A stretch of 64,000 bases of DNA, from positions 9,734,001 to 9,798,000 of the forward strand of contig JBHGNT010000002.1 of NCBI GenBank assembly GCA_043228905.1. Direction: 5' to 3'. The translations under genes were made by a program, and so were the position numbers. The notes under the pieces were generated by a model. That model made no database searches. It was given only the letters and a program-made list of their open reading frames with translations, and was not told the origin of the DNA. Position 1 is the stretch's first letter; each line of letters opens with the position of its first letter. The DNA is from Azolla caroliniana. Its lineage: Eukaryota > Plantae > Polypodiophyta. Of the stretch, positions 2,577 through 48,473 are shown piece by piece.

Positions 2577-3375
2577 TGTCGTGAAGGATTTGCTTCACGA
2601 TATAAAAATAAACCTGAATATTGTATTAAGTAACATTTGAGAGACTTGAACCCGTAACCTCACACACCAAGGGCGAAGCATATACCATTAGGATAAGTTA
2701 TTTTCTATAATTATACTTTTATCACCATACTTATGACATGTGTATCTTCATACATTAGAGCTTAGATGAGCATGATGGCTATCATGCATCACATGTAAAG
2801 CATGTGCGCCAAATGGCGACCATGCATCACATGCATCACATGCATTACATGCATGCCATGCACCCCCATATCATCATATGCATGAGAGAACCTATAAAGA
2901 GAGGTAAGGAATTAAGGGATGAATCAAAGAAAAAACAAGGTAATCAATCAATGAAGAGAAAGTTAGAGAAATAAGATAATCAAAGAAATAAATAATAAGT
3001 TAGCTTGTTGGTGAAGAGGCTCGTGTTTCCAAGTTGGAGTCAAGGGTTGGAATCAAGAGTTGGTAGAGAAAGGGTTCATCTTGCTATCAAGCATTGTAAA
3101 GTTGGTAAAATCTTGTATTAATAATTTACATCATGTTCATATCATATACTTTAATTCCTTAAATCATACTTTGTCTCTATCTTGCTTCTTGAATCATACA
3201 TTGTCTCTATCCTTTATCTATACTTGTCTCTCTCTCACACACATTACTTTAAACTCTTATTCTTTTTATCCTTAATCTTCCTAACATTTGTGCGCAAGCC
3301 TTATAAAAGTTCCTTCAACTCCCCCTTAACCTTAGTCCCTGCGACTTCGCCGCACGAACCACAACTACCCCGACA
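2577..3375 (+). repeat. 5' LTR of gag-protease element
   Basis: TGTCG...CGACA termini; direct repeat of 5494-6292. Confidence 0.95.
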
Positions 3376-3414
3376 CATTTGGTGAACCCGATGTGAAGGC
3401 GGCGACAAGGGAAA

Positions 3415-5455
3415 ATGGAGGAGCAAATGAGGCTTATGTGTACAATGGTGGAACGAATGATGCGAGAGCAAGGAATGATGGCAAGCATCGACAAAGCCGT
3501 CGACAATATTCTTGCTCGAGTAGGAATCTTTGAAGGTATAAATTTAACAAAATGTCTGAAGATTTACAATGAAGAAATGCTTAAACGTGGTGTCGACGAA
3601 GCTGCAAAAATTAATAGCTTTAGTCGAGTCGTTGCGATTGGGCTACAAGAGAGGATCCAAGAGCTCCAAAGGGAGAATCAGACATGGACAACATTCGAAA
3701 GAGCATTACTCAATGAATACAACCTCAACAATATGTCAAGGATGACAAGGTGAGCTTTCATGGATTGGGTAGAGTCTAATAAACATTTAAGTATTTTGGA
3801 AGTATTAAAAGAGTTTTCTGAAAGATTTGAGCAACTAAATGTTAGAGATAGAAATATAATAGTGCTAGATAAAGTAATATTGTTTCTACAAGCTACTAAT
3901 ATTAAAGACAGGAAGGACTTGGGAATGCTTTTAGAAGATCAGAATAGTTCAAGTGGACTTACCGAAGACTGGGAGGAAATGAAAAGGGTGTGCGCCCATT
4001 TCTGCAAAAGAAAGTTATGGTTTATGGAGTTGCCCGACAGAAATGATGAAGAAACGGGGAATGAGTCGGGAGAAAAGAAAGTAGAAGAATAACTCTTACA
4101 CGAATTGGTGAAAGGCATGAAAGACTTTTCGATCAAAGTGACGAAGCTAGAATCGGGACAAAGCTCGACTTCATCAAGGCAGGGAGGTGGAATGGTCCGA
4201 AGGTGTATGTAGTGTGATAGTATCGACCACCAGAAGAAAGATTGTCAAGAGCATAAGGATGCTCTTAATCATAATAAAATCTATTATCAAGATGGCAAGA
4301 TTCACTCGACAGAGACTCGACAACCACTTCAACTCAACTTCGGGCGAGGAGGAATGAAAAAGCTAATGGAAGATGCTGAGAGAGAAACGACTCAAGCGAT
4401 ACAATCTGTGGCAACCTTAGGATTGCGCGTAGAAGGCTCATATGGTGGATCTGGCTTTTGGCAAGATGTGATGGATTATGCAAGAAAAGGGAAGGTTCAA
4501 GTGGATGAATTAAAAAGAGCGGGAGATGAAATATGAAACTTCACTAGATGGAATGATCCAGTAGACGCGCTATCAGCATTCGCCCAAGTGAATGCACAAG
4601 ATGTACTAGTGGAAGAGAAGCGAAAGAGAGCTCAGGAGGTTAATCTGGCAAAAAGGCATGAGACATAAGAACAAGAGAGAAGAGAGATGGAAAAGGATGC
4701 TCCTGAGTCAAAAGAAGCTGATAAAGTAAAAGGGAAGATAAACCCAGCTTTCCAGCTTGCTTCAGACACAAGACGTGACAGATTTAAAACATGTCACAGA
4801 AGAAGTTACGAGAGTGTGTTCAACAACACTCCAAGATCTAGATCGTGACACCATCAATGTTGCAAGTGTAAAGAAGATAAATAATATTGCAGTTCATGAA
4901 GGGGATAGGAGTCATTATACAAAGAACCATTGGGCTCAAGCAACAACAGAGGCACCTACAAAAATTGCGGAGCAACAAATTCCTTATATTTTTTTGATAG
5001 ATTATGGATCAAAAATTAACATGATGTCTTTGGAATGTTATGTTAAAGGAAGGTGGCCAATCGATAAGAATCATGGGTCCAAGAAAAGAGTTGCAACAGA
5101 GATGATGGAGGATCTATTCGGAGCATGTCCTAATGTGAAAGCAACAATGGGAGATGTGTCGGTGCGTGAAAATTACTATGTGAAACATGGATCAACCTAC
5201 CCTGTCATCCTTGGTCAACCATCCATCAGCGTAGTGAGTATGGAAACAAAGGATGGTGAACAATACATCAACGTAGTAAGGATGGAAACAATTGTGATTA
5301 ATGATGATTCAACTTTCGTGAGGATCAAGAGTCAGGATGGAAGGAAGAGGGGCCATATCATAACCATGACGCCTAACCATGAAAGAAACAAAGAATGCTT
5401 GAGGGGACATCCAGTTCCGAAACGGAATGAAGAGTTTTTCCAAGACTTTGGATGA
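3415..5455 (+). pseudogene. gag-aspartic protease polyprotein, disrupted
   Basis: Consecutive ORF pieces 3415-3753, 3760-4092, 4354-4536 and 4757-5455; Zn knuckle; LIDYGSKINMM and YPVILGQP protease motifs. Confidence 0.85.
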
Positions 5456-5493
5456 ACTTTGCACAACCAGTGTGCAAGTTCAGAGGGAGTGGG

Positions 5494-6292
5494 TGTTGTG
5501 AAGGATTTGCTTCACGATATAAAAATAAACCTGAATATTGTATTAAGTAACATTTGAGAGACTTCAACCCGTAACCTCACACACCAAGGACAAAGCATAT
5601 ACCATTAGGATAAGTTATTTTCTATAATTATGCTTTTATCACCATACCTATAACATGTGTACCTTCATACATTAGAGCTTAGATGAGCATGATGGCTATC
5701 ATGCATCACATGTAAAGCATGTGCGCCAAATGGCGACCATGCATCATATGCATCACATGCATTGCATTCATGCCATGCACCCCCATATCATCATATGCAT
5801 GAGAGAACCTATAAAGAGAGGTAAGGAATTAAGGGATGAATCAAAGAAAAAACAAGGTAATCAATCAATGAAGAGAAAGTTAAAGAAATAAGATAATCAA
5901 AGAAATAAATAATAAGTTAGCTTGTTGGTGAAGAGGCTCGTGTTTCCAAGTTGGAGTCAAGGGTTGGAATCAAGAGTTGGTAGAGAAAGGGTTCATCTTG
6001 CTATCAAGCATTGTAAAGTTGGTAAAATCTTGTATTCATAATATACATCATGTTCATATCATATACTTTAATTCCTTAAATCATACTTTGTCTCTATCTT
6101 GCTTCTTGAATCATACATTGTCTCTATCCTTTATCTATACTTGTCTCTCTCTCACACACATTATTTTAAACTCTTATTCTTTTTATCCTTAATCTTCCTA
6201 ACATTTGTGTGCAAGCCTTATAAAAGTTACTTCAACTCCCCCTTAACCTTAGTCCTTGCGACTTCGCCACACGAACCACAACTACCCCAATA
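5494..6292 (+). repeat. 3' LTR of gag-protease element
   Basis: Direct repeat of 2577-3375, preceded by the PPT. Confidence 0.95.
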
Positions 6293-8575: not shown

Positions 8576-8667
8576 CGGGATGGGTCCAACGTGTCGGGGC
8601 ACTGTCCCACACGCATGCCAGGTGTTGTCCGTCGGAATAGTAACCGACGGACAAGAGCGTAGGGTAC

Positions 8668-8840
8668 AGGAACTCGAGTTCCTATTTAAAGTTTGCGTTT
8701 TGGCACAGGAACTCGATACATCGTATCGAGTTCTTGTGTAAAGTATGTGTTTTATACATAAACTTGATACCCTGTATCGAGTTCCTGTTTACATTTTGTG
8801 ATTTATACATGATATCGATACGTCGTATCGAGTTACTGTA
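8668..8840. repeat. Array of four palindromic motifs (CAGGAACTCGATAC-NNN-GTATCGAGTTCCTG consensus)
   Basis: AGGAACTCGAGTTCCT at 8668-8683; further copies at 8704-8738, 8761-8788 and 8815-8840. Centres are about 46, 51 and 51 bp apart. Confidence 0.9.
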
Positions 8841-9361
8841 TAAAACACAAATTTTAAATAGGAATATTGTGTCTTTGGGGAACAATTTAGTATATGTGTG
8901 AAAAGATACCAAATTTTATGTCCAATTTAGATTTTTTTAGTGACATTTGCTATATTTTGTAACAACTAGTGGCCTTACTTAAAAAGGTTTTATGACCTAT
9001 AATAGCTTAAAATAATAGAAAAAAACCCACGAATTACCTTTATGATACCAAATTTAAGTCTCTCATATGAAAATTCTCTACAATATGGATATGGAATCAA
9101 TATAAGCCATACCTACCCTTCAATATGATACATATCCTTGTATAATTATTAAGATATATAATATTCGAAGTTGAATAGCCATTACTAGAATTAAATTCCG
9201 AATAAAGGACTATCATGTTCACTCAATATAAGATTGATATTTATAGTTTGCCACAAATCGCCTGTTAGTTTTTGTCTTCATCTACTTATGTATATTTTAA
9301 TATACAACCTTAATCTAGGTAACCACCTAACTGATATTTTCACATGTCCTTTCTTAAATAG

Positions 9362-12300
9362 GTCATTTGAGAACTTCTCGGACCGACCTATGAAGAAGAT
9401 AAAGCTCCAGATTCAGGGCTCTCCAATTGAGACCCAAAAAGTAATAGTTCCTCAAAACATGAAGAGAGGAAAAAATCTTCTCTTCAACAAGGAGACAAAA
9501 TCTCAACCATCTGATGATGTTAGCCAAAAGAAAATGTTAGCAGCTACTGGTGGTGATGACCTTCCAGACAATGATCTAACGAACAAGGAATGGTGTATGC
9601 AATACGTCGACTCCAAGAAAAAAGTTGTGTTGTATACAGCAAAGAAGAAGGGTGATAGTCAGCTTGAAAAGGAAACCGCATTTATGTATGGCCATATTCT
9701 ACGATTTGACTACGAAGATTCAGATTCAGCCAACATTCTTGTAATGATAGAGTGCTCGAAGGGGTTACGTAAAGTGTACCTTTCTAAAGATCGACTAGTA
9801 AAGGAATCTTGTGGGCCAAAATCTTTTAAAAAAGATCTAGAAAGCTCACAAAACCTGATTGTCACCTTGAGGATATACAAGGCCATGTAACTCTAAGGGA
9901 GCCCTTGCCCTCCCTAGTGAAGGCCCCGAAAAGGGCATCTAAAGTGCAATCAAGACCAGCAAAAAAGAAGACCACTAAAATGTCGGACTCCGACTCATCA
10001 AGCTCAAACGAAGATGAGGACACTAGGGGGACGTCATGAGTTGAGCTTGCATTGGGTGTGTTGTCATCCGAGTAGAATAAGATACAGAGAGAGTTAATGC
10101 AACGTAAATTGGTTAGAAAAGGGCAAGTGTTTAATTTGCCTATAACACACATCCATTGGCCCTCTGTAGATGAAAAAACAGGACGAAGACCACTTGAGAT
10201 CAGAGAGCCACACCGAATGCATGTTCAAAATCTCAAGAAAAAAATGAAAATTAATCCACATGCTACCGATGTGCCTTTTATTGCTATGGTGGATCTCTAA
10301 GAATGTGAAACCACTGAAGAATTCGACATAAGAAAGCATGATCAATACAATTACTTTGTAATTGGTGGATCACATTTGGCGGAGGCACGTCAGCAACTTG
10401 TGAGAGAACATGCAATGACATTCTTCTTCAAGTATGCCGAGTGCAAAATTTACGTAGGCCTCACAACTGAAGAGGCAAAGCTATTGGCATGGGACCACAA
10501 TAATGATAATGACTATAGGGAGAAAATGTCATCGATTGAGCGTATAAGGTTCTTCCACCACGAGTGACGTCAAACAAAAGTTCGGTGTGAAGCTACATCC
10601 AGGCCTACGACGTCAATGCTTGCATGAAGTCACCATTGTGGTGGATGATAATGTTAAGTCCGATGGTCTTCAGAAATATGAGTCCTGGTTACAACTTGCC
10701 TTTAGAGATGGAGAAGTATGGGACCTACAAGATCAAATCTTCTCAATGTGAGAGAATAAGGAGGTCAAGAGTCAACGACAAAAGAAATGTAAGGTAGACC
10801 CTCAACTAGAATTAAAATCACAAGCGGCCATGAAAATTGATTTGACAATTAAAGATGTGGTTGACGACATTAAGTTGTCTCTGTGGAGAGCGATGCAAGG
10901 TATTAAGGACGAGCAGCTTCGTGTCTGTTTTGTCAAGGGTTGTGGCTAAAGATTTAAGCCTTGAAGAAATGGTCACTGAGTTCAATAAGTAAGTCTTTCA
11001 AATACTAATATTGAATTCAATATGGTGCAATTGAAAGTTCAAATCTCGTTTTCTAATTTCACAGTCATAAGGTGTACATGAAGATCCAAGAAGTTATGAT
11101 GAAACAACTTGGATGTATAACTTGGGAACAAGTGAGCGAGGATTATCCTCTAACGTCTTTATATAAGGCGTTATTCCGAGTATTTTATTGCATTCAAGGA
11201 TTGGGTTAGTATTGGTGTTTTTTCATTAAGCTTTCCTCATATGTAGAGGTTGTGTAATAATACTTGATGATTTATTGCTTCTATTAGAAACCATGGCGTG
11301 GCAAGAAACAAGGAGAAGTTAAGGATATACACGATTTCCTGACATCCTTCCTTGCACATCTCGAGAGAGCTAGAAAAGAAAAGGATCATCGCTTAGTCAA
11401 GGCGTATGAAATTGAGGAAGATGGCTCCTTCAAAAAAATTAGCCACAGAAAGGATATTACGAGAGATCTTTACTACAACGTGGTTTGCGACGATATCATT
11501 GACATGATCCAAAAAGTGCCAAAGATAGAATATATGGTAATGATTGCTGATATTCCATACGGATTTCAAATGGCAGGGTCATCATACGACGATAAACCGT
11601 TTAGGTTTAAACAGTTAGAGAAGATGGTCAAGGATTTTGCTGAGCTAACGACTGCATCCTTGTGGAGAATAGTTGTCTTTCATAGTATGCACCAAGGGTA
11701 CTCGGTAGCTCAAGCTTTGAGATCTCGTTGCCATGGCATCGAGAACCTTGCATGGTAAGGCTTATTTATATGTCTCATTCACTATATTGCCTTTCTTAAG
11801 ATTGTTCAATCTATTTTTAACTCGATGTAATATTTGTTATAGGATAAAAACCAATGTAAATAGAGGGCCAACCTTTCGGTTCGTAAATGCCATTGAATAC
11901 ATTAGGGTTGGCTACTTCGATGAAATTAAGAAACAAAGAATCAAGGATCATTCTAATGAAGTGGGAGATTCAAATCTGTTGGTATATCCAGCAGTGACAC
12001 GGAAATTGCGACATGTCACCACGACAGAACGGGGACTTGTCAACCCATACCAAAAACCTCAATGACTTATGATGCGCTTGATCGAGATGTTTTCTGTAGA
12101 AGGAGATTGGATATTAGACCTCTTTTCTGGCACAGGTATTCCTCGAACTAGGTTAACGATCTTGAGATAACCAATACTGAATCTTTTTTGTTTGAAAACT
12201 AATTCTTCTTGTTACTTTCTTCACAGGGACAACGTCTGCATGTGCATTGAAGCTCTTTAGAAACACAGTTGCATTGGAGAAGGACGAGGAGCAAGTTATA

Positions 12301-12579
12301 TTTATAAACATGAGGATTAAGGCTTTGTGGGAGTGCCTAGACCAGGACGAGGAGGTCGGTGCAAAGAACCTCGCTGATACCGAAAGGTTTCAACCTGCTT
12401 CGCGAGAGCCTATTCCTCCGTTAGCTGGGGAACCGGGGGAGCTAATAGAGCTTGATGATGAGCTTATAGAAGATATTTCGTTGGCTCGGCTAACAGGGGA
12501 AGACAATGCACGTATAGCCGAAGAGACTTCTATACAGGATGAAGAAGAAAATGACATTGACGATTTGCTTGCTATGTAA
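9362..12579 (+). pseudogene. Intron-containing ParB/Srx-like domain plus beta-class N6-adenine/N4-cytosine DNA methyltransferase fusion gene (disrupted)
   Basis: ParB-like YFVIGGSHLAEARQQL...KIYVGLTTEEAKLLAWDHN...MSSIERI at about 10350-10550. Predicted introns 10989-11064, 11205-11287, 11755-11842 and 12136-12226. Spliced MTase reads VVCDDIIDMI...ADIPYG (11549-11560)...LAWIKTN...EYI...NPYQKPQ*LMMRLIEMFSVEGDWILDLFSGTGTTSACALKLFRNTVALEKD. Several stops and frameshifts. Confidence 0.85.
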
Positions 12580-13002
12580 TAGACTCTTTTGTTCACGAAA
12601 TGTATTGTTTGGAATTCACATTATTAATACAAATTTTGAGTTTTACTTGGTGTATTCTATTCTTTATAATCTTCTATATGTTTCAATTTTATTTCTATAT
12701 ACTTGGTTAGTAGAGTTATGACATTGGTTTCACCACGTGCATTGCTGACTACCAATATGGAGAAACATGAATTAGTTTAAATTAAGGTTGATTTTGGTCA
12801 AACTTTACCTTAACATAACATGGTCGTAGAATTGTTGCCATGATTGTCCATGTTGTTATTATGAATTTTTGTCTTCTATTGTTAAAACTATTATGTTTCT
12901 CTTCCATTGCTGCTTTGATTGTGTAGTGTGTTGATAATGGTTCCACTAGCGTTATCCGCATGTTTTTATATGTTTGTAGTTCCATTAGCGTTATTGTTCG
13001 GA

Positions 13003-13277
13003 GTTTGATCCAGTGTGAATCACCTAAGGAATAGATTAGATCAATTTTAAATACAAGTATAAAAGCCTTAATAGGTTTGTTATTTCCACCACATTATCCT
13101 AAAGTTCACTATCTTACATTGTCCACAATTATATACATATGGTTTGATCCCATACGAACAAACTGAGGAATAGATTAGATCAACTTTAAATACAAGTATT
13201 AAATACCTAAATAAGTTAGTTATTCCAATCACATTATCCTAAAGTTCACTATCCTACATTGTCCACAATTATATACA
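13003..13277. repeat. Tandem duplication of a unit of about 139 bp
   Basis: GTTTGATCC...AGGAATAGATTAGATCAA...CACATTATCCTAAAGTTCACTATC...GTCCACAATTATATACA at about 13003-13138 and 13142-13277. Confidence 0.85.
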
Positions 13278-13652
13278 CGCAAGTATGGGTCAAAGTATAA
13301 ATTATAACTCATTTTATTAGTATGGTTACAAGTACACCTCATATTTTTGTAAAACTTACCAAATTAATATAAGTCTTTAACTTAGTGTTTCCCATGTCGC
13401 ACATTAGTGAGATATTGAGCCATTGTTGAACTTTATTATGCCTACATTAACTTATCAACACATCCAAACTTATTTGAATTTCTAATGATCTCCACTCGTA
13501 GACCTATCATGTATTTTTATATTTGCAAATTCTAATCAAGTTGTGGAACATGTGATACTAGTGCATCCAATTTTTGTAGAGAGGGTATATTTGGATATTT
13601 TCAAGAAGATTCTACAAGTGGAATGCGTGATCCTTCCACTTGTGAATGCGAA

Positions 13653-16640
13653 CGTGTTAGTGGCGACGGACTATTGTACCAAATGGGTGGAATCCAAGGC
13701 TCTCTGAGACAACAGCGCGACATCAATGGCGAAGTTTTTGTACGAATATATATAGTGTGAATACACCATACTATCCGTAGGCAAACAGAGTGGCCGAACC
13801 AACAAATTGTTGGGTATATGTCCCTCCAGTGGGAGGAGTAGCCGACTGTCCAGGAGTAGTTGACAGTCGATAACTACGAGGAGCTGACTATTCGGAAATA
13901 GCCGACAGTCGAAGAGTCGAAAACAGAGAGTCGATTGTTTAATAGTTCGATTATTATTATTATAGCAATAATAGTAATGATATGCAGTAGTTGCTACAAT
14001 TGTAAATAGCCTATATAGTGTATAAGTATAAATATACTTAGGGCAAAACATTGATAGGTGTGTGTAGAACAGAAGTAGCGTGAGAGCGTGTTAGACAAAG
14101 AGTGAGTGAGAGCAGCGCCATAGCTATGTGTGTAACAACAGACTCCAATAGCCTTGCGTGGCTGATACACTCGGAGGAGTGTTGTAACATTTTGTGTTGT
14201 ATATCCACTATACATAGTGAAGCTCTATTCCCATGGTTTTCTCCCGTTTTAGGGTTTCCACATTAAATCTCTATGCACCATTGTTGTCCTGTTTTCTGGC
14301 ATATTTGTGATTCATATTTCAGCACAATTCGTTTATTGTGATTTGACCGAACGATTTCTCAACACAAATAAAACACCTCAAAACATCCTCCAGAAGATTG
14401 TGAACGAAAACTAGATGGATTGGGATACAAAGTTGCATAGTGCGTTATAGACATACCGGACAACATACAAAACAAGCATCCAGACAACACTGTTCCGATT
14501 AGCATTCAACCAGAGGCGGTCATGCCCATGGAATTTCAAATTCCCAGTCTGTGGATACGAGTCTGGGAGCGATTGGCCGAAAAGGAATCCGAACAACTCC
14601 GGTTGGAGACATTGTGTGAATTGGAGGAACATTAGATCGTCAGTCTACTGTAATTGGAGCTCAAGCAACGGTGACGGAAAGCATTTGTGGACCAACATCG
14701 GCAGGGGAACGAAAAAGACTTTGAAATAGGCAAACCGGTATTCGTATTCCATCCCTGGATGGGCAACATGCCGGGAAAACTAAGGTTCCAATGGACCAGA
14801 CCATTTTGGATCACAAGGGAGTTTAAGGGGTCCTATCAGCTGGGTACACTAGCCAAGGAATTACTAGGGAAATGGGTCAACAGATTCCGACTGAAACCGT
14901 ACAAAGGACTGATGCCGACAAACCCATTCAAGGAACCGGAGCAACAGGACTGGGCAACCGACGGAAGTCTGACAACACACGAGGAGTTGAAGGCAACATA
15001 GGGTCCAGAGAAGGACAATATACTGATTCCCCGCTCAACGGTGATGGAGCCCAGACTGGAGGCAGAACTAGCGGAGAGCCCGGAAGCGGTGAAAACGGTT
15101 CAACAAGAACCAGAGAAAGGAAGACAAATATCATCGGGTTTTCAAACGCAGCAACCGCATGGGGAACGCCGGCCAAAACGAGCACCGGAATGAGAGGAGC
15201 CGGGTATACTGAGGCTTGGAGATGAGCAAGAACTGATGTCAGAGCCAGTGCAACAGTTCACTGTACTCACACAACACGGAAACTGCTAGCAATGGCTGGA
15301 GTGGCTCGGAAAGTAGGTTTCCAGTGTGGCTGACCGGATGGAGGAAGAACAACGGGTGGAGCAAAGATAGGTGGAACAGTTGTTGACAATAGCCGAAGAA
15401 TTGAATAAAGCCCAAAAGTGGATTCAGAATCTGGAGGAGGAGTTGGCAAGGGGCAAGGAGTTCGTGGCACTCATGTCAAATATGGGCCAAAGCACAAGCT
15501 CAAGAACAGAGCCGGTAGAACCGGATAATCCATGGAAGAAAGCTCTGGAAAAGGAAGTAGAAATGAGGGCTAGCATAGCCCGGGAAAAAGAATGTCAGCG
15601 GGAGAACGAATTGCAAATGTTAAGGGAGGAGTTGGCCACTCAAGAAGCACTAAGAGAGAGAGAGAGAGAGAGATCATAGAAAGACAGTCGAGGAAGAAAA
15701 ACGGAGAACCGAGGAAAGTTTTCGGAAGAGTCAAGCAAACAACAATCGGCCGAAGTAGGAAAGAGGAATTTGCCGCAAGAGAAGGATAAGCTGCGGAGAA
15801 TGGTGGAGACAGAAATAGAAAGGCTAAAGGACGAAATCTAGCAGCACAAGGGTCGGGATGATCGGTTGCGGTCACAGTTCAACCAACGCCTAAAACTGAA
15901 TACAAAGGACTTCGAGAAGTTGTATCAGGACCATAAGTAGCTGGACGCGGAACATAAGAAGCTGGGGTCCAATTATGATATGCAACAAGAAAAGCTAAAG
16001 GAGGCCTAGACGGAGTTAAAGGAAATAACGGAGGCGCTGGCGGATCAAGGGAAGATGATGGTTGAGATGACGACAAAGGTTATGGAGGACGCGGTGAAAG
16101 AAAGAATGGAACTCTAGTCGCAGCAGTACGAGGAAGTGCAATGGGAAAAGATGGCTTTCGATAGGGTGCAAATGACCTACCAGACCCAATTTAGGGAGTA
16201 TGAAATACATGCGAAGGCGGCAGCCAACGTCATCAAGCAACTCAAGAACGAGAAGGAGGCTACGGAGGACAAGAAGAAGCTCGGCATCAAAAGGATCCAG
16301 ATTATCATCGAGGCATGGAGGGACCGAATGAATACAAAGATTGAAGATTGTGCATTGTCGGTATGGAATGAATGGTCCCGACAAGCGGTGGAACTCCAGA
16401 TACTCCGCGCCGATGCAGAAAACTAGAAAAAGGTTGGCGACAACTTCTACAAGATGGATGAAGAAAGAATTGTCACCATTTGGGAGGAATTGTCGGATGA
16501 TTTTTTTTCCTTGCCAGAAAACATCTTAGATAAAAGCTCAAACCCTTGGATAAAAGCATATTGGACATACTCGACGAAGAGGTAAGGAGCTAACCCATGG
16601 GTTCGATGTGCACTATCCCATGCGCATGCCATCTATTGAC
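13653..16640 (+). mobile_element. Degenerate gypsy copy B (integrase C-terminal part, 3' extra coiled-coil ORF, LTR start motif), related to A
   Basis: VLVATDYCTKWVESKAL, QKIVNEN and GKLRFQWTRPFW match A. Extra ORF has EN*KKVGDNFYKMDEE. GGGTTCGATGTGCACTATCCCATGCGCATGCCA at about 16599-16631. Confidence 0.85.
13808..14364 (+). mobile_element. Solo LTR (copia-type, related to the LTR at 48322-53531)
   Basis: TGTTG...CAACA termini and perfect 5-bp TSD CAAAT (13803-13807, 14365-14369). It splits the integrase of gypsy B. Its start TGTTGGGTATATGTCCCTC resembles TGTTAGGAATATGTCCCTC at 53531 (minus). Confidence 0.9.
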
Positions 16641-23859: not shown

Positions 23860-26800
23860 ATTTCTAATATACACACATATATTTTTATGACATGTATACG
23901 ATTAAATAACAAAACATAACCAACAAATGATGTAATCAAGATACGTAATCAAGGCATATAGCCTCTACGCACTTGTAACATACAAAGATAAGAGTGTTCA
24001 CGTAATACGCCATAGAGGTATTGACCTCTTATGCATACGACTCAAATCGCATATCCAATATATGAAAATTGAGGTATTGACCTCATACACATATGTACGT
24101 GAATGTGATACACAATTGAGGTATTGACCTCATACGCATACATGTATACATTTTATACAACCAAAGGATTACCACTACAACATAATTAAATTATTGAATA
24201 ATTACATATCGATATAAACATAATTAGAATAGGAGAAGAAAGAATAGAAAAAAAAAAAGGAAAATATTAAAGTTCCTTTGTTGATGCATATCTGGATCCA
24301 ACTCGAACGAACATCGATCGATCACCATCCAACAAAACAAGTCAACAAAAGAAACATTAGGAAAAACAATCAGATACCAACTGTTAGAGCTTAATCCTAA
24401 TTTAATCATATGATAAGGAAATAATAGATAGATATATAAGAGAGGTGTTAAGAGTTATGAACTAACGTAAGCATATGATAAGGATAAAAGATATATGAAA
24501 TAAGAAAGGAGAGAGAGAAAGAAGGGTGCCGATCCACCTGACCACCCACGAGCGGAGGGATCAAGACGGACTCGAGCCTCGATCGGCGTCCCATACCACT
24601 GTCGTGGTGTGAAGTCGTACCTGGTGCTGGCGCACTCACTACAAGAGTTGACCAACCACAAGAACAGAGACTCGACGTAGTCAAGAGATCATGAAATGAG
24701 GGTAGCTAGGCCTCATATTTATAGTGATACCCAAGGCCCCCAGGCAAGTTCACACTTGGCCTAATGTCTCAATCCCGAGGATTAAAAGTAATCCTCCCCT
24801 TCTTTACACTCTCGTTTAACCCTCACACTTATCCACATGTATAGAATACTACGGTAAATTCTCACCACGAGATATTGTATGGTCATGCCCATAACATACT
24901 CCCCCGTCTTTAAAACATTGCACTCTTGCAATGAAAAGTTAGGGAAGTTAGTTCTAAGAGTATTTTCACGTTCCCATGTGGCATCTTTGATAAATTTATC
25001 CATCCATTTAATTTTAAATTCTCAAATTATTTTTGTACGTAGATTTTTTGTTTTAACATCGAGAATTCTTTCTGGTACATGTGGTTTAGAAGATAATTCT
25101 TCAGAAGTAACCAGAGTTTCAGTTATAACTGTATTGTAGCCAGAACCTACAAGTTCTTTTAGACGACTTACATGAAAAACTGGATGAATTTCAATGTCAT
25201 CAGGAAGAGCGAGATGATAGGCTGATGAACCAATGCGTTTGAGGACTTGAAAAGGTCCACAAAATCGTGGGGCTAATTTAGCGCACTTACTCGTAGACAA
25301 TGTCTTAGAATTGTGAGGTACACGTAAAAATACCTTCTGTTCAAGGTTGAATACACGAGGTTGCCTATTATGATCAGCGTAAAAACGTGTTGTATCTTGA
25401 GCTGTTTTTATATTATCTCGTGCAATATGCAACATATCTTGCATATCCCGAAGAAAGTTTTGCATACTTTGCAACTCATCATGATTTATATTAACATCAA
25501 TCGGGGCTCATGGCTAAAAACCATACATCAACATAAAAGTATTATATCCCGTCAACGTATGCTTGGAGCTGTTATAAGCAAACTCCAAATTTGGGAGATA
25601 ACATTCCCATTTTGTTGGTTTTGCACCAACGTATGCTCGAAGCATGTCCTCAATAATTTGATTTACTCGTTTTGTCTGTCCATCAGATTGAGAGTGATCC
25701 GTGGAGGTCATGCTCAACGTAGTTTCTAACTTCTTAAAGACTTGCATTTAGAAATCACTAGTAAATTTTGGATCTCGATCACTCACGATATCCATTGGTA
25801 ACCCATTAAAACGAAATAACTCGTCAACAAATTGGTAAGCCAATTCAGGAGTTGTTACCATGGTTTTAGTAGCAATAAATCTGGCCATTTTAGTTAGTCT
25901 ATCAACCACAAACCAGATGACAACATGGCCTTTTTGGGTGCGAGGAAGGCTAACAATAAATTCCATAGATATACTTTCCCACTTATTACTGGGAATGTCC
26001 AAAGGATGTAAAAGTTCCGCGACTTTAAATCGCATGACTTTGTTAACCTAACATTCGATATATACACATATGTATATTTATCACACATATACAATCAAAT
26101 ACGTATACACGTGACCACATATGCGTATATTAAGAAAAATTGTAACATCAAATAGCCAACATATGATGAAATCGAGACACGTAATTGAGGCATATCGCCT
26201 CTACGCACACGAAACATCCAAAAATAAGGGTTCATCGTAATACGCAATTGAGGTATTGACCTTTTATGCATACAACACCAAACGCATATCATTTACATAA
26301 AAATTGAGGTATTGACCTCATACACATACGTAACATATGTTTGTGAACATAATACGCAATTGAGGTATTAACCTCATACGCATACGACACAAATCACATA
26401 TCAAATATGTGTCAAATGAGGTATTAACCTCATACACATATGTAAATGTTTTATACAACCAATTAATTACCACTACAACATCATTGAATCAATGAAAAAC
26501 AACACATATTGACTATACATTATTAGATTGGGAGAAGAAAGAATAAGAAAAAAAAAAAGGAAAAGCTACCGAAGTTCCTTTGTTGATTGTTATCTGGATC
26601 AAGGTTGACCGCACGTCGATCAATCACCATCAACAAGAAGAAAAAAGCCAACAAAAGAAACATTTGAACATAAGCTCTGATACCAACTGTTACCACGTAA
26701 GCATATGATAAGGATAAAAGATATATGAAATAAGAAAGGAGAGAGAGAAAGAAGGGTGCTAATCCACCCAACCACCCCCGAGCAAAGGGATCGATATTAT

Positions 26801-30345: not shown

Positions 30346-30470
30346 GAGAAAGAGCGAAGCTATGTCAGATCTGATGAGACGACTCTGTTTCAATTGAAGT
30401 AAAAAGATCCCCCTCCCCTCCTCCCCGTCTCCCGTAACAAAAAAAGGGGAAGGGGAACAGAAAGTGAAAG

Positions 30471-31559
30471 ATGTTGAGGCCTTCATATTGGCTACTGATT
30501 TTCCCCACTCTCAACAAGGTGAGAAGGTCACCAAAGCTCATCTTCTTCCTTGTGTCCCTAACCTTATTCTGCTTCTCCACGATTGTCATTCTGTTTGGAT
30601 TCGAAGTCCATGTCGATGTCTCAACACTCTGCGAAATCAATCGCAAGGTTCCTAGCCTAACCCAGCATAGATCTTCTTCTTCTTCTTCTTCCCTTCATCA
30701 ACAGAAGCCCATAAAATTCTCCATCCTCACCTTTGCAGATTCAAAGGCATTTAAGACCTATTCCTCCTCTATCCCCAGCTTGCTAGAGTCTAGATCTATC
30801 TATGCAGATCTCTATGGCTATGAAATGAAGACCTATTTCCACAAACCAGAAGCAAAGAGGAGGCTTGTGTGGTCAAAAGTGCCAGCTATTTATGAAACCC
30901 TGTTTGGGGATGATTTACCTTCATCTTCATCATCATCATCATCATCATCGCCATCATCAAGAAGCAATACTAACAATAGTGACAGTACTTACTCTATATA
31001 CAATAGTAACCACAACCATAACAATGTTGAACATTGGGTATGGGTGCTAGATGTGGACACACTTATATTTAACTACAATGTAAAGCTCGAACACGTGGTC
31101 GGATGGGCGGGCACGAAATGGGCAGCCTCTGCCTCAAAATGGGCAGCCATGGATATGATCATATCGATGGACATGAATGGCATAAACGCAGGGTCATTCA
31201 TGGTGAGGAGGAGTGAGTGGACAAGGGAGCTTCTTAAGAGATGGTGGTCAAGGAATGATGTAAGTGTGCCCAACATTGGGGGTATGTTCGAACAAGCCGC
31301 CCTAGCCGACCTTATCCACAAGGACACTAGTGTAGCAAGCCATGTTCAAATTGTGCCCCAGAGGACGTTTAACGCGTACGGCTACCCTTCTCCCGAGGAA
31401 TCGGGCTTGTTCCACATCGGCGATTTCATTGTGCATTGCCCTAGCCCTAGCCGTAAACGTCGCCTACCGTCTTATGCTAGGGCATGGGAGAGAATGATGA
31501 AGGAATGTAAGCTTAGAGAGCTTTGGATGGATGGTGGTCACCTATTGGATGGTGCCTAA
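30471..31559 (+). CDS. Glycosyltransferase family 34 (GMA12/MNN10 galactosyl/mannosyl/xylosyltransferase family), type II membrane protein
   Basis: Intact 362-aa single-exon ORF with an N-terminal TM helix. Motifs WSKVPAI, WVWVLDVDTLIFN (DxD), DMNGINAGSFMVRRSEW, FEQAAL, VPQRTFNAY and GDFIVH. Confidence 0.9.
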   Translation: MLRPSYWLLIFPTLNKVRRSPKLIFFLVSLTLFCFSTIVILFGFEVHVDVSTLCEINRKVPSLTQHRSSSSSSSLHQQKPIKFSILTFADSKAFKTYSSSIPSLLESRSIYADLYGYEMKTYFHKPEAKRRLVWSKVPAIYETLFGDDLPSSSSSSSSSSPSSRSNTNNSDSTYSIYNSNHNHNNVEHWVWVLDVDTLIFNYNVKLEHVVGWAGTKWAASASKWAAMDMIISMDMNGINAGSFMVRRSEWTRELLKRWWSRNDVSVPNIGGMFEQAALADLIHKDTSVASHVQIVPQRTFNAYGYPSPEESGLFHIGDFIVHCPSPSRKRRLPSYARAWERMMKECKLRELWMDGGHLLDGA

Positions 31560-33418: not shown

Positions 33419-35653
33419 TCAATCTATATCTTCTATGAAGTCCTCGATGTCATCATCATGCTCATGAGAAGTACTTGTAAAAATATGACGATATGCCTTG
33501 CTTTCTCGCCACAACAAAATGCTGGCATTGAAGTCATGTTCTTCTAATTCAGGTCCTTCAATAGATATTCGTATCAATGCATCAACCGCATTGGTTTTTA
33601 GCCTATTTCTAAACTTATTTTTTATTAGATTTAGGCGACTAAAGCCTCTCTCACATGCTGCCGTAGAAGAACACTGAATTAACCCTATCAATGAAAGCTT
33701 TAGAAGCTCGGGTAGTTTTTCTTTCCACACATCATTACAATTTATCATACCCCAAACATCTAAGAAATCTCTTCCAAGCCATTCCGTGGTAGCTTGCCTT
33801 TTGAAAATTGCATATTCATCATACAATTTATCATTATCAATTATGGGAGAAAACGCTTTCCCATCTATCATTTTTTGAATGCCATAAAAATTTCCAAGTG
33901 TTTTCAACTCATTAAGACCCATAGTTTTTCGTGCTAAAATGCTTGTAGATCCGGTAGACATGTTCATTGGTGATAACATTTTCAATGCGGAAAGAGTCAC
34001 CGGATCTTGAAGCCTCTTTTTTATTGTCTCTATCAATGCCTTAGAAAACAAAGTTTGGAATTGTATGGCTTCAATTAAGTCCTCACCATCAACACTTCTA
34101 TCGATGAGGATGCTTTTATACATATTACCTTTTGTGGCATCTCGTAAAACTGAAAGCATTCCTTTTTCTCTACCATATTCTGGAATAATTGGATAATTAT
34201 CGTTATCCTTCTCAAAACCATTCAGATCCATCATAACATGATGTAAAAATTGTTCTTCTATCTCCCCAATGGCTATCATAGCCAAACCTCCAATGCATGT
34301 CACATCCACATATTCCTCTTGGAATTCCATACTTAATGTAGACATGATCTTAAGTACATCTGCAAGGAAGTGAAGCATATACACTACTTTAAAGTTTCTT
34401 AAACTCAAGAATACATTGTATGCATCACTTTGCGATTGCAAAGTCTTCATCAAGGGTTCATACACATCACATACCCTCATGATAGCACCATGCCGACTAA
34501 GCCATCGTGTCTTCACAATCCCAAGAATATGCAAATGTGTGTATTCTAATGCATCTTGCATCTTACTTAATTCACCTTGGTGCATTGAGCTCCTCGAGAA
34601 ATGTGCAGCCACCCGATTCACAAGGGCATCTAACTGCTTGCATGTTTCTTTGACTTCGACGTTCTTTGAAGCCTCTTGCACACACAAGTTTGTTCGATGT
34701 GCACAACAATGTAATGAAGTCATAAATGGATTATATGACTTCAATCTTGTAGCAACACCTGTAGACATACCTACCATAACAGATGCTCCATCACTTCCAA
34801 ATCCCATCATTTTTCTAACATCTAAGTTCCACTTTTTTAACAACGCTAAAATGTTTTCTGTTATTGTTTTTGCTGTACCATCCTCTACTTCAAGTACCCC
34901 TAAATAAGAGGTTCGTACTTGCCTTCCTTCCACAAATGTAGCGTAAAGGATCAAGTTCTTGGTCACACTTACATCGGTAGCTTCATCTACCATAAGCCCA
35001 AACCAAGGACTTGTCCTCAACCTTTCATATATCTCGGCTTCAAGAGCCTTGCTAATGTGCAAGATAAAGCTTGCACAAGCCTTATTATCATTGTACATTC
35101 GTGGAAGGCCTTCCACACCACACTCTCTTAATAAACGTAAGAGGTTTTCCAATTTTCTAAATGCCAAATCCTCTTTAGCTATAAAATATGCACATTTAAA
35201 CAATTTTTCAACTGCTAAATCCACACTAGCTTTTTTCTTTGATGCACATTTTTCAAGACCATTCTTGTCTCGTTCTTGTAACAAAATGGCATCTCGATGG
35301 GCCACACTTCTTGCATGTTCTTCTAATGCAGAAGTCTTAAAAAATTTTGCACCTGTTTTTCCAAATAAGGACTTACAATGTGGGTCATTCCTACAATAAC
35401 TACACCATAGAAGCCCAGTTTCTAAATCCTCTTGAAGCCACTTAAATTTAGTAGGCCAATCTTCTTGAAATCTTAGTTTCGCCTTACTAACTCTATTTAT
35501 TTCATTAATTGACTCTTGAGAGTATTGTTGGTCTTTTATAGGTTCTTCTAGAGACACATCTTCATTAGAAGATGACATGTTCTTCCTAAAACAAGGCATT
35601 GTATGAAGGCTCATTTGTTTTCCCTTGCCTTTGTTATTTTTGTTGTGCGACAT
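33419..35653 (-). CDS. hAT transposase (ZNF862/KIAA1586-like)
   Basis: Uninterrupted ORF; likely ATG at 35653 after a TTACAG acceptor. Zn finger (WCSYC...H...H), DEATD, GSDGAS, HCCAH, TRWLS and STAACERGFS dimerisation motif. Confidence 0.92.
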   Translation of the reverse strand: MSHNKNNKGKGKQMSLHTMPCFRKNMSSSNEDVSLEEPIKDQQYSQESINEINRVSKAKLRFQEDWPTKFKWLQEDLETGLLWCSYCRNDPHCKSLFGKTGAKFFKTSALEEHARSVAHRDAILLQERDKNGLEKCASKKKASVDLAVEKLFKCAYFIAKEDLAFRKLENLLRLLRECGVEGLPRMYNDNKACASFILHISKALEAEIYERLRTSPWFGLMVDEATDVSVTKNLILYATFVEGRQVRTSYLGVLEVEDGTAKTITENILALLKKWNLDVRKMMGFGSDGASVMVGMSTGVATRLKSYNPFMTSLHCCAHRTNLCVQEASKNVEVKETCKQLDALVNRVAAHFSRSSMHQGELSKMQDALEYTHLHILGIVKTRWLSRHGAIMRVCDVYEPLMKTLQSQSDAYNVFLSLRNFKVVYMLHFLADVLKIMSTLSMEFQEEYVDVTCIGGLAMIAIGEIEEQFLHHVMMDLNGFEKDNDNYPIIPEYGREKGMLSVLRDATKGNMYKSILIDRSVDGEDLIEAIQFQTLFSKALIETIKKRLQDPVTLSALKMLSPMNMSTGSTSILARKTMGLNELKTLGNFYGIQKMIDGKAFSPIIDNDKLYDEYAIFKRQATTEWLGRDFLDVWGMINCNDVWKEKLPELLKLSLIGLIQCSSTAACERGFSRLNLIKNKFRNRLKTNAVDALIRISIEGPELEEHDFNASILLWRESKAYRHIFTSTSHEHDDDIEDFIEDID

Positions 35654-37384
35654 ACTGTAACAATAAGGTAGAGTATATTGAACAATCATAATCTATCATT
35701 TTCATTTACAAGAAAGGGAAACATACATACACAATCCATGTTTTCCAAAGAGAATAAGAAAATTAAAATACCCGGAATATATGGAAGATTGCGAGGCTAT
35801 AAAAGATTGAGTTTCCACTATGGATCTTCCAATCTATAAAAAAATAAAGAAGAAAGAGGAAGCCTCACATTAGCTTACACGCACATGCAAATGATAAATA
35901 ATACATATCTTCACTATTTACTAGTTCATCTCTTTCTTAGCGTGTTCGATGCAAAACGCAATTGAAACTCTTAAATTGAATGTCAAAACCTCAAAATAAT
36001 TTCACTATCAATGAGACATACATGCATTGTCTTCGTCTCATGCATGCATTGTCTTCGTCTCATGTTTGGGTCATAAAGTCAAAAGTTTGAGCAATACATT
36101 GTACACATCATACATGTGTATCCAAATATGCACAAAGTGGCCTCGTGGTGTTTACACTAATTATGCTACTCTATCTTGACTTGTCCTAAACTTGTATGCT
36201 ACTCTTGGATCTTCATACAAATCTATTTACATAGAGACAATATGAAATACATGAGCATATGTAACAATTCTTGCTACATCTATATTGAAAGCACCACTTC
36301 ATCTTAAGGTTTATGGTAAGTTTGTTTAAAGTAATTGAAATTACCATGCAATGTATTGATTATGAACCGTCACTACAACATTGGTTAGGGACTCATTGGT
36401 TTAAAGCTTAGCAAATCAAGCGATATAAAACCGAGAGAACATGGGTTAGGAATCAGGATGACATGTTATCAAATCACTTGCTCCAACTCGTTCCTAATGA
36501 CATCAACATACTCTCTTAGATACGTAGTTCCACATCTTACATGAAAAAAATGAGCAAGACCATTGACAAGTACACAATTGTTCGCATTCGGCTCAAACTA
36601 GGAGACAAATAGACGGGAGAAAACGACAACTAGTAGCAAGTTATGAAATCTATGTGGGAGGGGAATACAAACAAATGAGCATTTCATTGACATATGCTAT
36701 GCATGCTATATTGGAGGCAATTACCATTATATATTTCGGGACAAATTCGGACCATTGTACCAAATCACGGAGTGCGAAGGCCCAAAAAGTTTATGATATT
36801 CTTTCTCATGGTTAAACACACTTGCCACGAATCATGGGCCCATGCACTTCTCTCCTCTTCTTTGCCACTTCTCTCCTCTTCTTTGCCTTTTTTTGAAAAC
36901 AAAAAAACAGAGGAAAGCAGAGCCTTTGTTTCCCTCTCTCTTCTTGTTGACTCTGATTGTTTTCTGTGTATCCAACAGCAGCAAGCAAGCCATCTTAAAA
37001 CTTTATAAGGTTTCACCATTAAATTAGGGTCTCAATCCCAATACAGGCCTAATTCTGAGAGAGTCTCAGTGTCCTTTTGAAAGCCTCAAACTTTCATACC
37101 CTGATTGACAGAAGAGGCACTCTGATGCTCTCAAAACATACAACAATCTCTTTTGATGCCCCTAAAAAATGATTTAGATATATCTCCAGCTTCTAGCTTC
37201 CATCATCGTTCTGAAATCCTAACAGCCATATCCATTGGAGCAGCTAGCTGCAAAGATGTATGAGGTAAAGCACTTATAGATCCAGCTATGGAGATGAGTT
37301 AATCACTTGAAACTTTCTTTCAAGGTCTTTCTTGTTCCTTTGCAAGAATTGTTAGCGAGAAAGAATTATGAGGTTTCAAAGAGA

Positions 37385-41386: not shown

Positions 41387-44300
41387 TGTTGAGAGACAAG
41401 CTCAACATCGGCCGGATCGGCTGAAGAAGCCGAGGACCGGATCGGTTGGGACCGATCGGTTAGGCCGAGTGCGTAAACCGGGAGGTCGTTAGGAAAGATA
41501 TTCCGTGAGGAATATATTTGGGAGTTAGTGTAGGAGTTCTTGATGAGCATTGAAGTACTGTCAGTACTTCGGTCAGTCCTTCTAGGACTTGTATAAAAGT
41601 GTTCACTGAGCACGTCTTATGTACAGACTGAGTATTATTGTTGAATATAGTGTTTGTGTCTTCTCTCTCACTCTCTCTGTCTCTCCCGCGTATACCGTGT
41701 AAGCTCAAGCTCTCCATTGAACTTGAGTTTCCTTCCTTCTGTTTGGTCTTCATACTTGCTTCCGCACGTTACTTTCTACATGGTATCAGAGCGTGAGGGT
41801 TGAGAACCTCTCTGCAGCCGACACAGCTTGACGAAGGAGAACAAGAAGAACGATGGATAGAGGCATGGTGAGCTCGCTTCCAACAGAGAAGCTCGACAGA
41901 ACCAACTACGCGTCTTGGTCCTACAAGATGCACCAGTACCTGCTCAGGCACGGCTGCTGGAGTTATGTCGAAGGAGCTAATGACGCGGCACCCGAATCGA
42001 CACACAAAGACTTCCCGTCGTGGGAGCAATCGGCGAGCAGGGTATTATACTGCTTCGCGTCGTGTGTGGGCGAACAACCATTGAGCTATGTTCGGGATGC
42101 AAAGACGCCGAAGGGTGCGTGGGAAAATTTGAAGAAGATTTTCGCCGCAAGCACCACAGCCAGGAAGCTTCAACTCCGACAGGAGTTGAGCAACCTACGA
42201 CAACGCGACTTGTCGGTGGCGGACTATACCTCGAAGATGAAGGATATCTGCGACTCCCTCGCCTCCATATAGGTGAACATCGAGGAGAGCGAGATGGTCC
42301 AGATCTGTCTCGGAGGTTTGGCGTCGAAGTTCAGAGCGTTCCGAACGGCTGTGTGTGCCCGGGAGAATACGTTGTTCGAGCATTGACTTACAGTCAATTA
42401 TCCTGGTAGAGGAGAACCACGCGGGTGCGTCTACAAGCACGCACACCGACAACAGAATGCTGTACACGGAGGGAGATAGGCCCCGTGGACATGGAGGACG
42501 AGGCGAGTCGGCACGCAATGGAGGCGGCCGACGAGATCAGGGAAGAAGGCACCGAAGTGATGCCGACAGCAACTCCGGACCCTTTGGAAACAAGGGGAGT
42601 CGAAGCGATGAGAACCGGCAAGGGAAGTCCATCACGGAGTGCTAGTACTGTGGCAAGAAAGGCCACGGGGAAAGTGAGTGCTGGAAGAAGCGCGCCGATT
42701 CGGAGAGAACCGGTTCCGAAAACGGCTCCGGACATACCGACAAGGGAAATCGGCAGCGATTGCACTACGCCGAAGACTCCGGGAGAGCCGGAGAAGGGTC
42801 TGTCTTCGTGAAGAGACACGAAGTAAACTCAATGAAGCAGACCACCCCGAGATCGGACGAGGTGTGGTACGTAGACTCCGGCGCGTCAAACCACATGACG
42901 AGCCATAAGGAATGGTTCTCGTACCTTGAAAAACCGAGACAACCTGGAGTAGTCGCAACTGGAGACGACACTCCGCATCCGATCGCGAATGTCGGAGAAG
43001 TTCCCCTTAGCCATGTCGGGCAGAAAGGGAAACTCATGAACGTGCTGCACGTCCCGACAATCACGAAAAACTTGGTCTCGGTCGGACAGATTGTCGACCA
43101 AGGGATGGAGGTTCGGTTTACACACCTTGGGTGCTTCATTGAGGAAGAAGGCCGTGTGATTGTGCAAGGGCGCAGAGACGGGAGGATGTTCATCCTCGAC
43201 TCCATTGACGGCAGCACCGCAATGTTCGCAAAGGGAAGAAAAACCGAGTCGGACATTGACTTGTGGCATAAGCGGATAGGCCACGTCAACTACCAGCGGC
43301 TTCAAGATCTGCAAACGAAACAGGTGGTATTCGGATTGCCCAAATTTAGTGGCCGAAAGGCACAAATTTGTGAAGCCTCCCAGCTCGGGAAGCAACACCG
43401 ACTTCCTTTCCCAAACGAGTGAAACCAGAGCCGGAATAAGCTTGACCTTATACACTCCGATGTATGGGGGCCGACACAAAACGTTAGTCTTGGCGGGAGC
43501 CGATATTTCGTCTCCTTCATCGACGACCACACGCGGCACGCGTGGATCTACCTCATTGAGAGGAAGAGCGAAGTCTTCGCCTATTTCCGGTACCTCAAAG
43601 GGTTCGTGGAAACGGAAACGGGACTAAAGATCAGGTGCCTGCGGTCGAATGGCAGGAAAGAGTACTTTTCTGGTCAATTCAACGGTTATCTACAACAAAT
43701 GGGAATTCGGCGTGAATTCAGTTGTAGATACACGCCAGAGTAGAACGGCGTGGCTGAGACGAAGAATCGGTCGATTGTGGAAGTGGCACGGGCAATGCTG
43801 GAGGAGAAGAGCTTGCCCAAGTTCTACTGGGCCGAGGTGGTAAGGACCGCGGTATACATCCAGAACCGGATCGGAGACAAAGTGTCGGCGCACCAGCTAT
43901 ATTTCGGAACGAAGACGAACTTGCGACACTTGAGGGTGTTCGGTAGCATTGCGTATGTGCATGTACCGAAGGAGAAAAGGAGGAAGCTGGACGCAAAGGC
44001 CGAGAAGTGCATCTTGGTCGGTTACTCGGACGAGTAGAAGGGTTATAAGTGGTATAACCCTCGCACCAAACAAGCGCGTGTCAGCCGCGACGTTGTGTTT
44101 GACGAGTCCGCGTCCTCGTACCTGCCCCCGACTCCGAACCCCGCCCCCAATCCAAGCTCTGACGATGAGGCCAACGAGGCCGAGATGCCTCCGGATGAGC
44201 CCGAAATCGAGACCCGTGAAGAGAGTCCGATTTCACTCCGATTAAGTGGACCGATTGGACGACTGAGTCGGTACGACCAGTCCAATGAAGAGCCGGCGAG

Positions 44301-47067: not shown

Positions 47068-48473
47068 ATTACTTTTCCGGAGTAATCGGGGCAAGGAATT
47101 GTGGTCGCGTAAAAGAGTAGGGTAGGGTCTAGCAAGGCGGAAACATTACACCTTGCAGGGTTGAACCCTCCGAGAATCGGCTACAACCGATTCATGCTCA
47201 CGATTTCATATGTTAGATAACAGAATCATAAATAAGGTTAAGATGAGACACACACAAAGTTTGGCCCAAAAAGTACATGTATTGATTACTAAATATAGCA
47301 ATTACAAGAGTAGTATAGACCGATTATAATTAGTAACGCTCTCTCTCTTAATACAAATCTTCGAATCTAAACTTAATCACTCTGGCTCGAAATAGGGATA
47401 TCTGTTGCCTGTCCTTCCTTCTGTTGCTTCCCGTTTTAGATATAACTTTCTCCTTAATCGGCGCATTCCAACTACTCTCTTCTAATCCTCGGCTTATGTC
47501 TCGGCTGCTAGTATTTCGGTTACTTTCCCCCTTGGCTGCTATTGTTTAGGCCTTTTCCTTCGCTTTTGACCTACTAGTCCCTTTTTACTCTTTACTTTAA
47601 GATTCTTTCCACACTTCATGCCTTTTGTCCCACGGATAACACCTGGCATGACTGTGGGATAGTGCTTTCCATGTCGAACCCAAAAAAAATCGAACTCAAA
47701 CATATTGCCATCCGAAAAAATGCTATAATACACTTATTCCTCCTCCAAAATGCTCGTGAGACTCTCCACCTACTTCGGCTCGTCCGGTTTGAGCTCGGCT
47801 ATCAATTCTAGCCCGTGGTTTGTTAATGTCGGAACAACCTCTTGGGCGTTGTTTGGTTGAGTCACCTCTGCTTGTGTTGGCTTGTCTAGGTGGAGCTCGA
47901 CTGGCAATTCTAGTCGTTGCTCTGCATCCGCCAACGTAGCTTCTGGAGCCATCTCCTCCTATTTTGGCTCTGTGATCTGGGTGGCCCTCGGTTTGATCGG
48001 TTGGTCCAAGGGCGTTCCATCGTCTATTTTCGGCTCTTGTCTTGCTTGCTCGGTCAACACGTCTGCTGCAGTGGCTTCAACTTCCTTCTCGGCTCGGAGA
48101 CGCTCGCATTCATATCCTTTCGTTTCAATGGTGAGCAACAATTGATCATTGTTGAATTCCTCAAGGAGGGTTCCGATGGTCATGGTGTGTGTGCACGCCA
48201 AGACCTGGAATTCCTCAATGAGGTCTTTGCGGAGGATTTGAATGCTTTTCTCGTCCATTTTGTAAAACCCGTGGCCCTCCTTTTGTCAGTTTTTGGTATA
48301 AGGATTTAACTTCCTTTGACCTGTGAGAAAGACCAACTGAAATCCATGCAAAATACGCGGAAAATAGAAGACATAGGTTTTACGTGGAAACCCCAAACGG
48401 GGAAAAAAACCACGGGAACACAGATCCACTATACAATGGAGAATACAAAGGAGACGGTATACAACTCTGTGTG

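Follow-up and report, generated by a model that had tools for sequence, protein, structure and literature searches.

The design closest to the one examined here has been described in Sola1-1_Ec32, an element of the brown alga Ectocarpus in which a Sola1 transposase is accompanied on the opposite strand by a gene for a ParB-like domain and an N4/N6 DNA methyltransferase, and for which self-modification is proposed (PMC12477816). Plavaka PAG2/PAG3 of Bostrychia likewise carry a PF01555 methylase and a ParB-domain protein, with tandem inverted-repeat arrays beside the ParB gene (10.1101/2025.02.11.637652). Modification of the element by its own accessory proteins is, in these accounts of algal transposons, a proposal (PMC12477816; 10.1101/2025.02.11.637652). 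Land plants have been described as possessing few adenine methylases (PMC4738411), and our literature search, which was thin on subscription journals, found no published account of such elements in land plants.

The window analysed here is a stretch of 64,000 nucleotides from the fern Azolla caroliniana. Its ParB-methyltransferase (ParB-MTase) gene lies in a transposon fragment with the following features, given by window position and strand.

8660-13658, plus strand: right-hand fragment (~5 kb) of a Sola1-type DNA transposon with terminal inverted repeats (TIRs), holding the palindrome array, the ParB-MTase pseudogene and the right TIR; the transposase half is missing
8668-8831, no strand: palindrome array of 17-bp TCGATAC-N3-GTATCGA units at 8713, 8764 and 8815 (51-bp spacing), with a degenerate unit at 8668
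9362-10988, plus strand: exon A (exon 1), N-terminal region, ParB/Srx N-domain and ParB-type helical DNA-binding domain, placed by tblastn with intact relatives and a model of relatives; 3 frameshifts, 4 stops
~10076-10460, plus strand: predicted ParB/Srx N-domain within exon A
11065-11204, plus strand: exon B (exon 2), helical linker; +1 frameshift near 11174
11288-11754, plus strand: exon C (exon 3), N-terminal half of the MTase including motif IV DIPY, supported by 88 homologs; frame open
11843-12135, plus strand: exon D (exon 4), W-x-K, EYI, NPYQKP and the start of motif I (DLFSG), matched by PF01555; a single stop at 12063
12227-12579, plus strand: exon E (exon 5), end of motif I, ALEKD motif, acidic tail and stop codon, collinear with residues 548-636 of the Ginkgo protein P0119
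13622-13658, no strand: right TIR, ending ...CGTGTT, an inverted match (89-92%) to the left ends of relatives L035 and L105

The preliminary description of this DNA had proposed that removal of four GT-AG introns rebuilds a methyltransferase, and comparison with relatives bears this out. Searches were run per exon or with natural homologs as the query. Compared exon by exon, the window exons tile the annotated protein P0119 in order with short gaps at the joints (exon 3 ends at its residue 444, exon 4 covers 448-546 and exon 5 starts at 548), and they are also collinear with the intronless natural open reading frame P0132. All four introns have GT-AG ends. Introns 1 and 2 are kept in each of the eight aligned copies. 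Across 18 divergent relatives, intron 3 agrees with the window in position, phase and GT-AG ends in every one, and intron 4 does so in 16, its location in the remaining two not being clean; the intron interiors vary freely. Intron 3 interrupts the Trp codon of W-x-K (between TG and G, joining 11754 to 11843) and intron 4 the motif I Gly codon (between G and GG, joining 12135 to 12227), exactly as first proposed. A splice acceptor at 9360-61, immediately 5' of exon A, is conserved in 7 of 7 copies, which implies a further intron upstream. The window copy has an in-frame ATG at 9390; the DNA upstream of exon A shows no conservation among copies, and neither the 5' exon nor the start codon could be placed there.

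The copy itself is a pseudogene, as was originally suggested, with four frameshifts (near 9873, 10566, 10927 and 11174) and five stops (10037, 10073, 10298, 10749 and 12063). The stretch is absent from all listed RNA runs; one paralogous 241-nt exon-D contig of 86% identity contains no splice joint.

The motifs DIPY, W-I-K, EYI, NPYQKP, DLFSGTG and ALEKD are all found in the window gene, with motif IV (DIPY, exon C) preceding motif I (DLFSGTG, spanning exons D and E). The PF01555 profile matches a 23-aa motif I piece of window exon 4 at E 2.5e-4 (21.5 bits for the piece alone, Pfam cut-off 26.7), and the relatives score above that cut-off, at 34.7-65.7 bits. Their exon 4 is matched at E 7e-10 and Ginkgo P0119 at E 8e-18, and the Chara and Riccia homologs match as well. 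Sequence searches of the PDB with exon alignments gave no significant match. The MTase domain of P0132, as modelled (pLDDT 83), adopts a permuted Rossmann fold whose best structural match is CcrM (E 1.5e-15, TM 0.75), followed by M.BceJIV, M1.HpyAVI, MboIIA and RsrI; lower in the ranking are the rotifer N4CMT (15), PvuII (38) and METTL3 (39). By motif order, profile and predicted fold, the encoded enzyme is thus assigned to the beta-class amino-DNA-methyltransferases, in agreement with the first reading of its motifs, and is distinct from the plant C5 methyltransferases.

Motif IV reads DIPY in 55 of the 65 homologs in which it is readable, distant members carrying DPPY, DFPY or DAPY, and motif I and the acidic motif-II residue are kept from Chara to ferns. 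DIPY is also motif IV of the HindIII-type N6-adenine beta-MTases (PMC12294265), whereas the Marchantia enzymes that write N4-methylcytosine (4mC) carry TSPPY (10.1101/2021.02.12.428880). Because of these two motif comparisons, and because the top structural matches are N6-adenine enzymes, the predicted product is likelier to be N6-methyladenine (6mA) than 4mC. The amino-methyltransferase class proposed at the outset stands, and of the two products then named, 6mA and 4mC, the former is favoured. An enzyme of the MpDN4MT1 4mC type was considered and rejected, TSPPY being absent as motif IV.

The ParB-like part of the fusion was recognized by its fold. The Pfam ParBc profile, named in the preliminary description as a check, gave no match with single window exons or with relatives. 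A model of the exon A region, made from relatives, matches ParB, Noc, PadC and KorB, and the match extends over the N-domain as well as the helical DNA-binding segment (Foldseek E 1.7e-5 to ParB/Noc; VIA Z 10.1 to PadC, 9.3 to KorB and 5.0 to the KorB DNA-binding domain), and at this level the proposed fusion is upheld. ParB uses the arginine motif GxxR for CTP. The corresponding position reads GGSH across the transposon ParB-MTase family and GGCH in Ginkgo; we therefore call the domain ParB-like and do not assume a canonical CTPase clamp, and CTP clamping by it is doubtful.

The motif TCGATAC-N3-GTATCGA is found three times in the window against 0.12 expected by chance, and in relatives it recurs, in up to ten units, between the transposase and the ParB-MTase gene. 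Unit spacings cluster at 31, 41, 51, 62, 72 etc. with a period of 10.3-10.4 bp (p 2e-4, from distinct values that are not fully independent), and such a period suggests that bound proteins would line up along a single face of the helix. Subfamilies have different palindromes, namely TCGATGC-N3, CCGATGC-N3 and a ATGCATGCAT-type at ~107-bp spacing (L064:4106-4290, L096:6713-6810, L078:3637, L109:4922-5351); of these, L109 is a distant relative with its own array at ~107-bp spacing. No array is evident in the distant elements L104, L107, L108 and L110, and in the bacterial genomes scanned for the palindrome the matches listed are isolated single sites, with no arrays among them. The presumed recognition helix, SDGLRKYEPW, is identical in the TCGATAC-site and TCGATGC-site subfamilies, and no specificity co-variation between helix and palindrome was found across these two. 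Some copies (L010:821, L011:1215, L014:643, L013:727, L025:4616) apparently start at or within the array beside unrelated DNA; the array may be a hot spot of breakage or insertion, or such starts may be assembly artefacts.

Complete relatives are ~7.6-8.9 kb long and consist of a TIR, the transposase (minus strand), the palindrome array, the ParB-MTase gene (plus strand) and a second TIR, the TIRs measuring 21-35 bp in L070, L078, L105, L107 and L109. The transposase of ~890 aa matches DUF7869 at E 1e-51 to 1e-53, and its Sola1-type D-D-D motifs (DGxxQ, DNxxxENKN and GHTHxxIDQ) match, when compared by eye, those of the Sola1-1_Ec32 transposase. Window positions 9351-13658 have 81.6% nucleotide identity to relative L026. 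Subterminal conservation begins at 13543 and sequence is shared to exactly 13658 before it diverges; 11 loci have this terminal base in common, with ten different flanks between them, and homologous contigs contain ~26 different right flanks beyond the shared TIR. Judged from these alignments, the ParB-MTase gene is an accessory gene of a multi-copy transposon, which we call Sola1-type from the by-eye motif comparison. Target site duplications of Sola1 elements are 4 bp, classically AWWT. A perfect 4-bp flank match was present in one of seven two-ended contigs (L064) and in none of the other six, possibly as a result of collapsed repeat assemblies, and the 26 right flanks are AT-leaning and not AWWT.

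In the window, tblastn found no transposase, and no left TIR is present anywhere in the 64,000 nucleotides. The left junction near 8660 is abrupt and cuts a retroelement-derived repeat. A public contig matches window positions 8603-8659 and then runs into other sequence, as would be expected had the transposase half been lost by deletion. The right end of the transposon lies inside a gypsy integrase frame with a VATDY motif (13659-13764 and 14307-14480) that is split by an LTR-like insertion at ~13770-14300. The 3' non-coding part of the element contains a tandem duplication of ~136 bp (13003-13277, 86% identical), both copies of which are matched by L026 and L025.

Other features of the window include an older gypsy element (RNase H at 1-402, integrase at 955-1320) within which an LTR element is nested at 2577-6288, the 795-bp LTRs of the latter being 97.6% identical. 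Two related arrays of a 56-bp repeat (23986-24141 and 26221-26445) lie ~2.2 kb apart and flank a gypsy SH3/chromo-type fragment (25025-25507). An open 363-aa Glyco_transf_34 (galactosyl/xylosyl transferase) frame on the plus strand at 30468-31556 is an apparent host gene among the repeats, and an open 757-aa hAT transposase frame (zf-C17orf113, DUF4371 and hAT dimerisation domain) occupies the minus strand at 33422-35692. Copia elements are found at 41387-46973, 48350-52900 and 56137-61360, two of them with 98% identical LTRs, and an open 1251-aa frame lies on the minus strand of a copia region at 57121-60873.

Homologs of the ParB-MTase occur in Chara, Riccia, ferns and Ginkgo and are annotated as a gene in the latter three; the close named homologs are from the ferns Ceratopteris and Adiantum. 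Open-frame natural copies, for which a search across fern, lycophyte and bryophyte genomes had been suggested, were found, with homologs in ferns and Riccia. In 12 loci the DUF7869 transposase is head-to-head with the ParB-MTase gene, even where ParB identity is as low as 26-40%, and the layout persists in the distant elements L108, L109 and L110, which have 26-36% ParB identity and DPPY or DAPY motifs. Distances between transposases correlate with those between ParB sequences (Mantel rho 0.89, p 2e-4); the comparison shows long co-inheritance of the two genes and is not proof of functional coupling, since shared descent alone gives such a correlation. dN/dS is ~0.04-0.07 in exons A, C, D and E (unsaturated pairs only, 2-22 per exon), which indicates that the protein was under purifying selection while the element spread. 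The transposase and ParB trees are poorly resolved, with long-branch warnings, and support no donor or order of events. A scan of viral contigs with P0132, which detects close relatives only, found no relative. Among prokaryotic proteins, the MTase profile finds its best matches in ParB-MTase fusions of ~400 aa that match phage families; their ParB parts are not alignable by sequence with the transposon ParB, and therefore we claim no direct phage-type donor.

Taken together, sequence and structural models make it on balance probable that a ParB-like dimer docks on the array of its own element and brings the MTase there, controlling expression or evading silencing. The ParB-type DNA-binding domain would bind the phased palindromes as a dimer, as ParB and KorB do at parS and operator sites, the fused beta-class MTase would thereby be brought to its own element, and an amino-methyl mark, most likely N6-methyladenine, would be written near two divergent promoters. 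The element would probably benefit by regulating its own expression or by evading 5mC silencing imposed by the host. Marking of its own element, which the preliminary description also suggested, stays conjectural and had already been put forward for the same architecture in Ectocarpus (PMC12477816). The window copy is dead; on this reading it landed in the gypsy integrase, was deprived of its left half and then accumulated its lesions. A broader reading, in which a transposon lineage of long standing in streptophytes (Chara, liverworts, ferns, Ginkgo) encodes a self-targeting epigenetic module, combining a ParB-type reader on a phased parS-like array with a fused writer that puts 6mA on its own element and so counters 5mC silencing, is offered as a tentative possibility. 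On that reading, land plants would have in this family an enzyme that places 6mA in DNA at targeted sequences.

At phage terminase loci, ParB-MTase fusions are believed to modify the DNA while it is being packaged (PMC4738411), and the best prokaryotic matches of the MTase profile are, as noted, to fusions that match phage families. By this analogy an active methylase could work in trans or at transposition, on termini, new insertions or target DNA, with the transposase or a host factor binding the array, and some distant elements have no visible array. We consider this unlikely, because the array occupies the middle of the element, 5' of the ParB gene and a long way from either terminus, its 3-bp-spacer palindrome suits a dimeric HTH, and in Plavaka PAG3 a ParB without an MTase has the same array adjacency (10.1101/2025.02.11.637652). 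A KorB-like regulator of the divergent promoters, with an MTase domain that is catalytically weak or dead and kept for binding or dimerisation, could explain a motif IV that reads DIPY and not DPPY, and inactive transposon-borne MTases do exist (DIRS1, PMC4738411). However, active HindIII-type enzymes use DIPY as their catalytic motif (PMC12294265), and the conservation of motif I and the acidic residue, together with the DPPY, DFPY or DAPY of distant members, makes this regulator-only reading improbable.

Methylation of a different target, either 4mC in DNA or m6A in RNA, draws on the beta fold common to rotifer N4CMT, PvuII and METTL3; with SPPY absent, DNA N6-adenine enzymes as best matches and a DNA-binding domain fused, we regard this as improbable. 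The preliminary description had also called the gene eukaryote-domesticated and transposon-borne. Its spliceosomal introns, and its annotation as a gene in Ginkgo, Riccia and ferns, would suit a domesticated single-copy host gene of which the window copy is a pseudogene, but the shared TIR with its many right flanks, the transposase pairing in long contigs and the multiple copies make that extremely improbable. For the family this candidate is largely refuted, as there is no single fixed locus free of transposon ends; the gene is transposon-borne, and host domestication falls away.

The family forms a compact unit: its enzyme exists in natural copies whose frame is open, an array is at hand as candidate binding site, and the element that carries both is defined. 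Should the enzyme be active, it would account enzymatically for 6mA in ferns and liverworts and would amount to a new anti-silencing strategy. The window copy itself adds little, being one more decayed, truncated insertion.

Among known enzymes, CcrM, M.BceJIV, M1.HpyAVI and M.HindIII share the predicted fold and the IV-before-I order at ~20% identity, and DIPY is as in the HindIII group (PMC12294265). MpDN4MT1 of Marchantia and N4CMT of bdelloid rotifers are likewise prokaryote-type amino-MTases in multicellular eukaryotes, N4CMT having a beta-type fold, but both are host genes writing 4mC, and MpDN4MT1, set apart here by its description, carries TSPPY. To our knowledge, neither is ParB-fused transposon cargo. 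The chlorophyte-type Dam with ParB-HTH also joins a eukaryotic ParB-type domain to an adenine methylase; its MTase is of Group 2 (M.EcoKI/M.TaqI-like), whereas that of the ParB-MTase described here has a beta-class (M.MboIIA-like) fold (PMC4738411). Phage-type fusions (PHROG 498/67; ParB-terminase loci, PMC4738411) place a ParB N-domain before a beta-class amino-MTase in the same way, but are ~400 aa long, carry DPPY and lack both introns and the long helical DNA-binding segment. Plavaka PAG2/PAG3 resemble the present elements in their transposon-borne PF01555 methylase, ParB domain and arrays adjoining the ParB gene; they differ in belonging to the EnSpm/Plavaka superfamily and in dividing the two domains between separate genes, one joining ParB with a 2OG oxygenase and the other joining the methylase with SET.

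Sola1-1_Ec32 shares the Sola1-type transposase, the opposite-strand ParB-MTase gene, catalytic motifs that match by eye, and AAC...GTT termini (AACCG-CGGTT there, AACAC-GTGTT in fern-type elements). It is 21.5 kb long with 282-bp TIRs, whereas the streptophyte elements are ~7.6-8.9 kb with TIRs of ~35 bp; the latter have the palindrome array, of which the available part of the Ectocarpus account makes no mention, and the accessory proteins are likened by their architecture. On that account, both the architecture and the idea of self-modification are already published for Ectocarpus, and the occurrence in streptophytes extends a known design.
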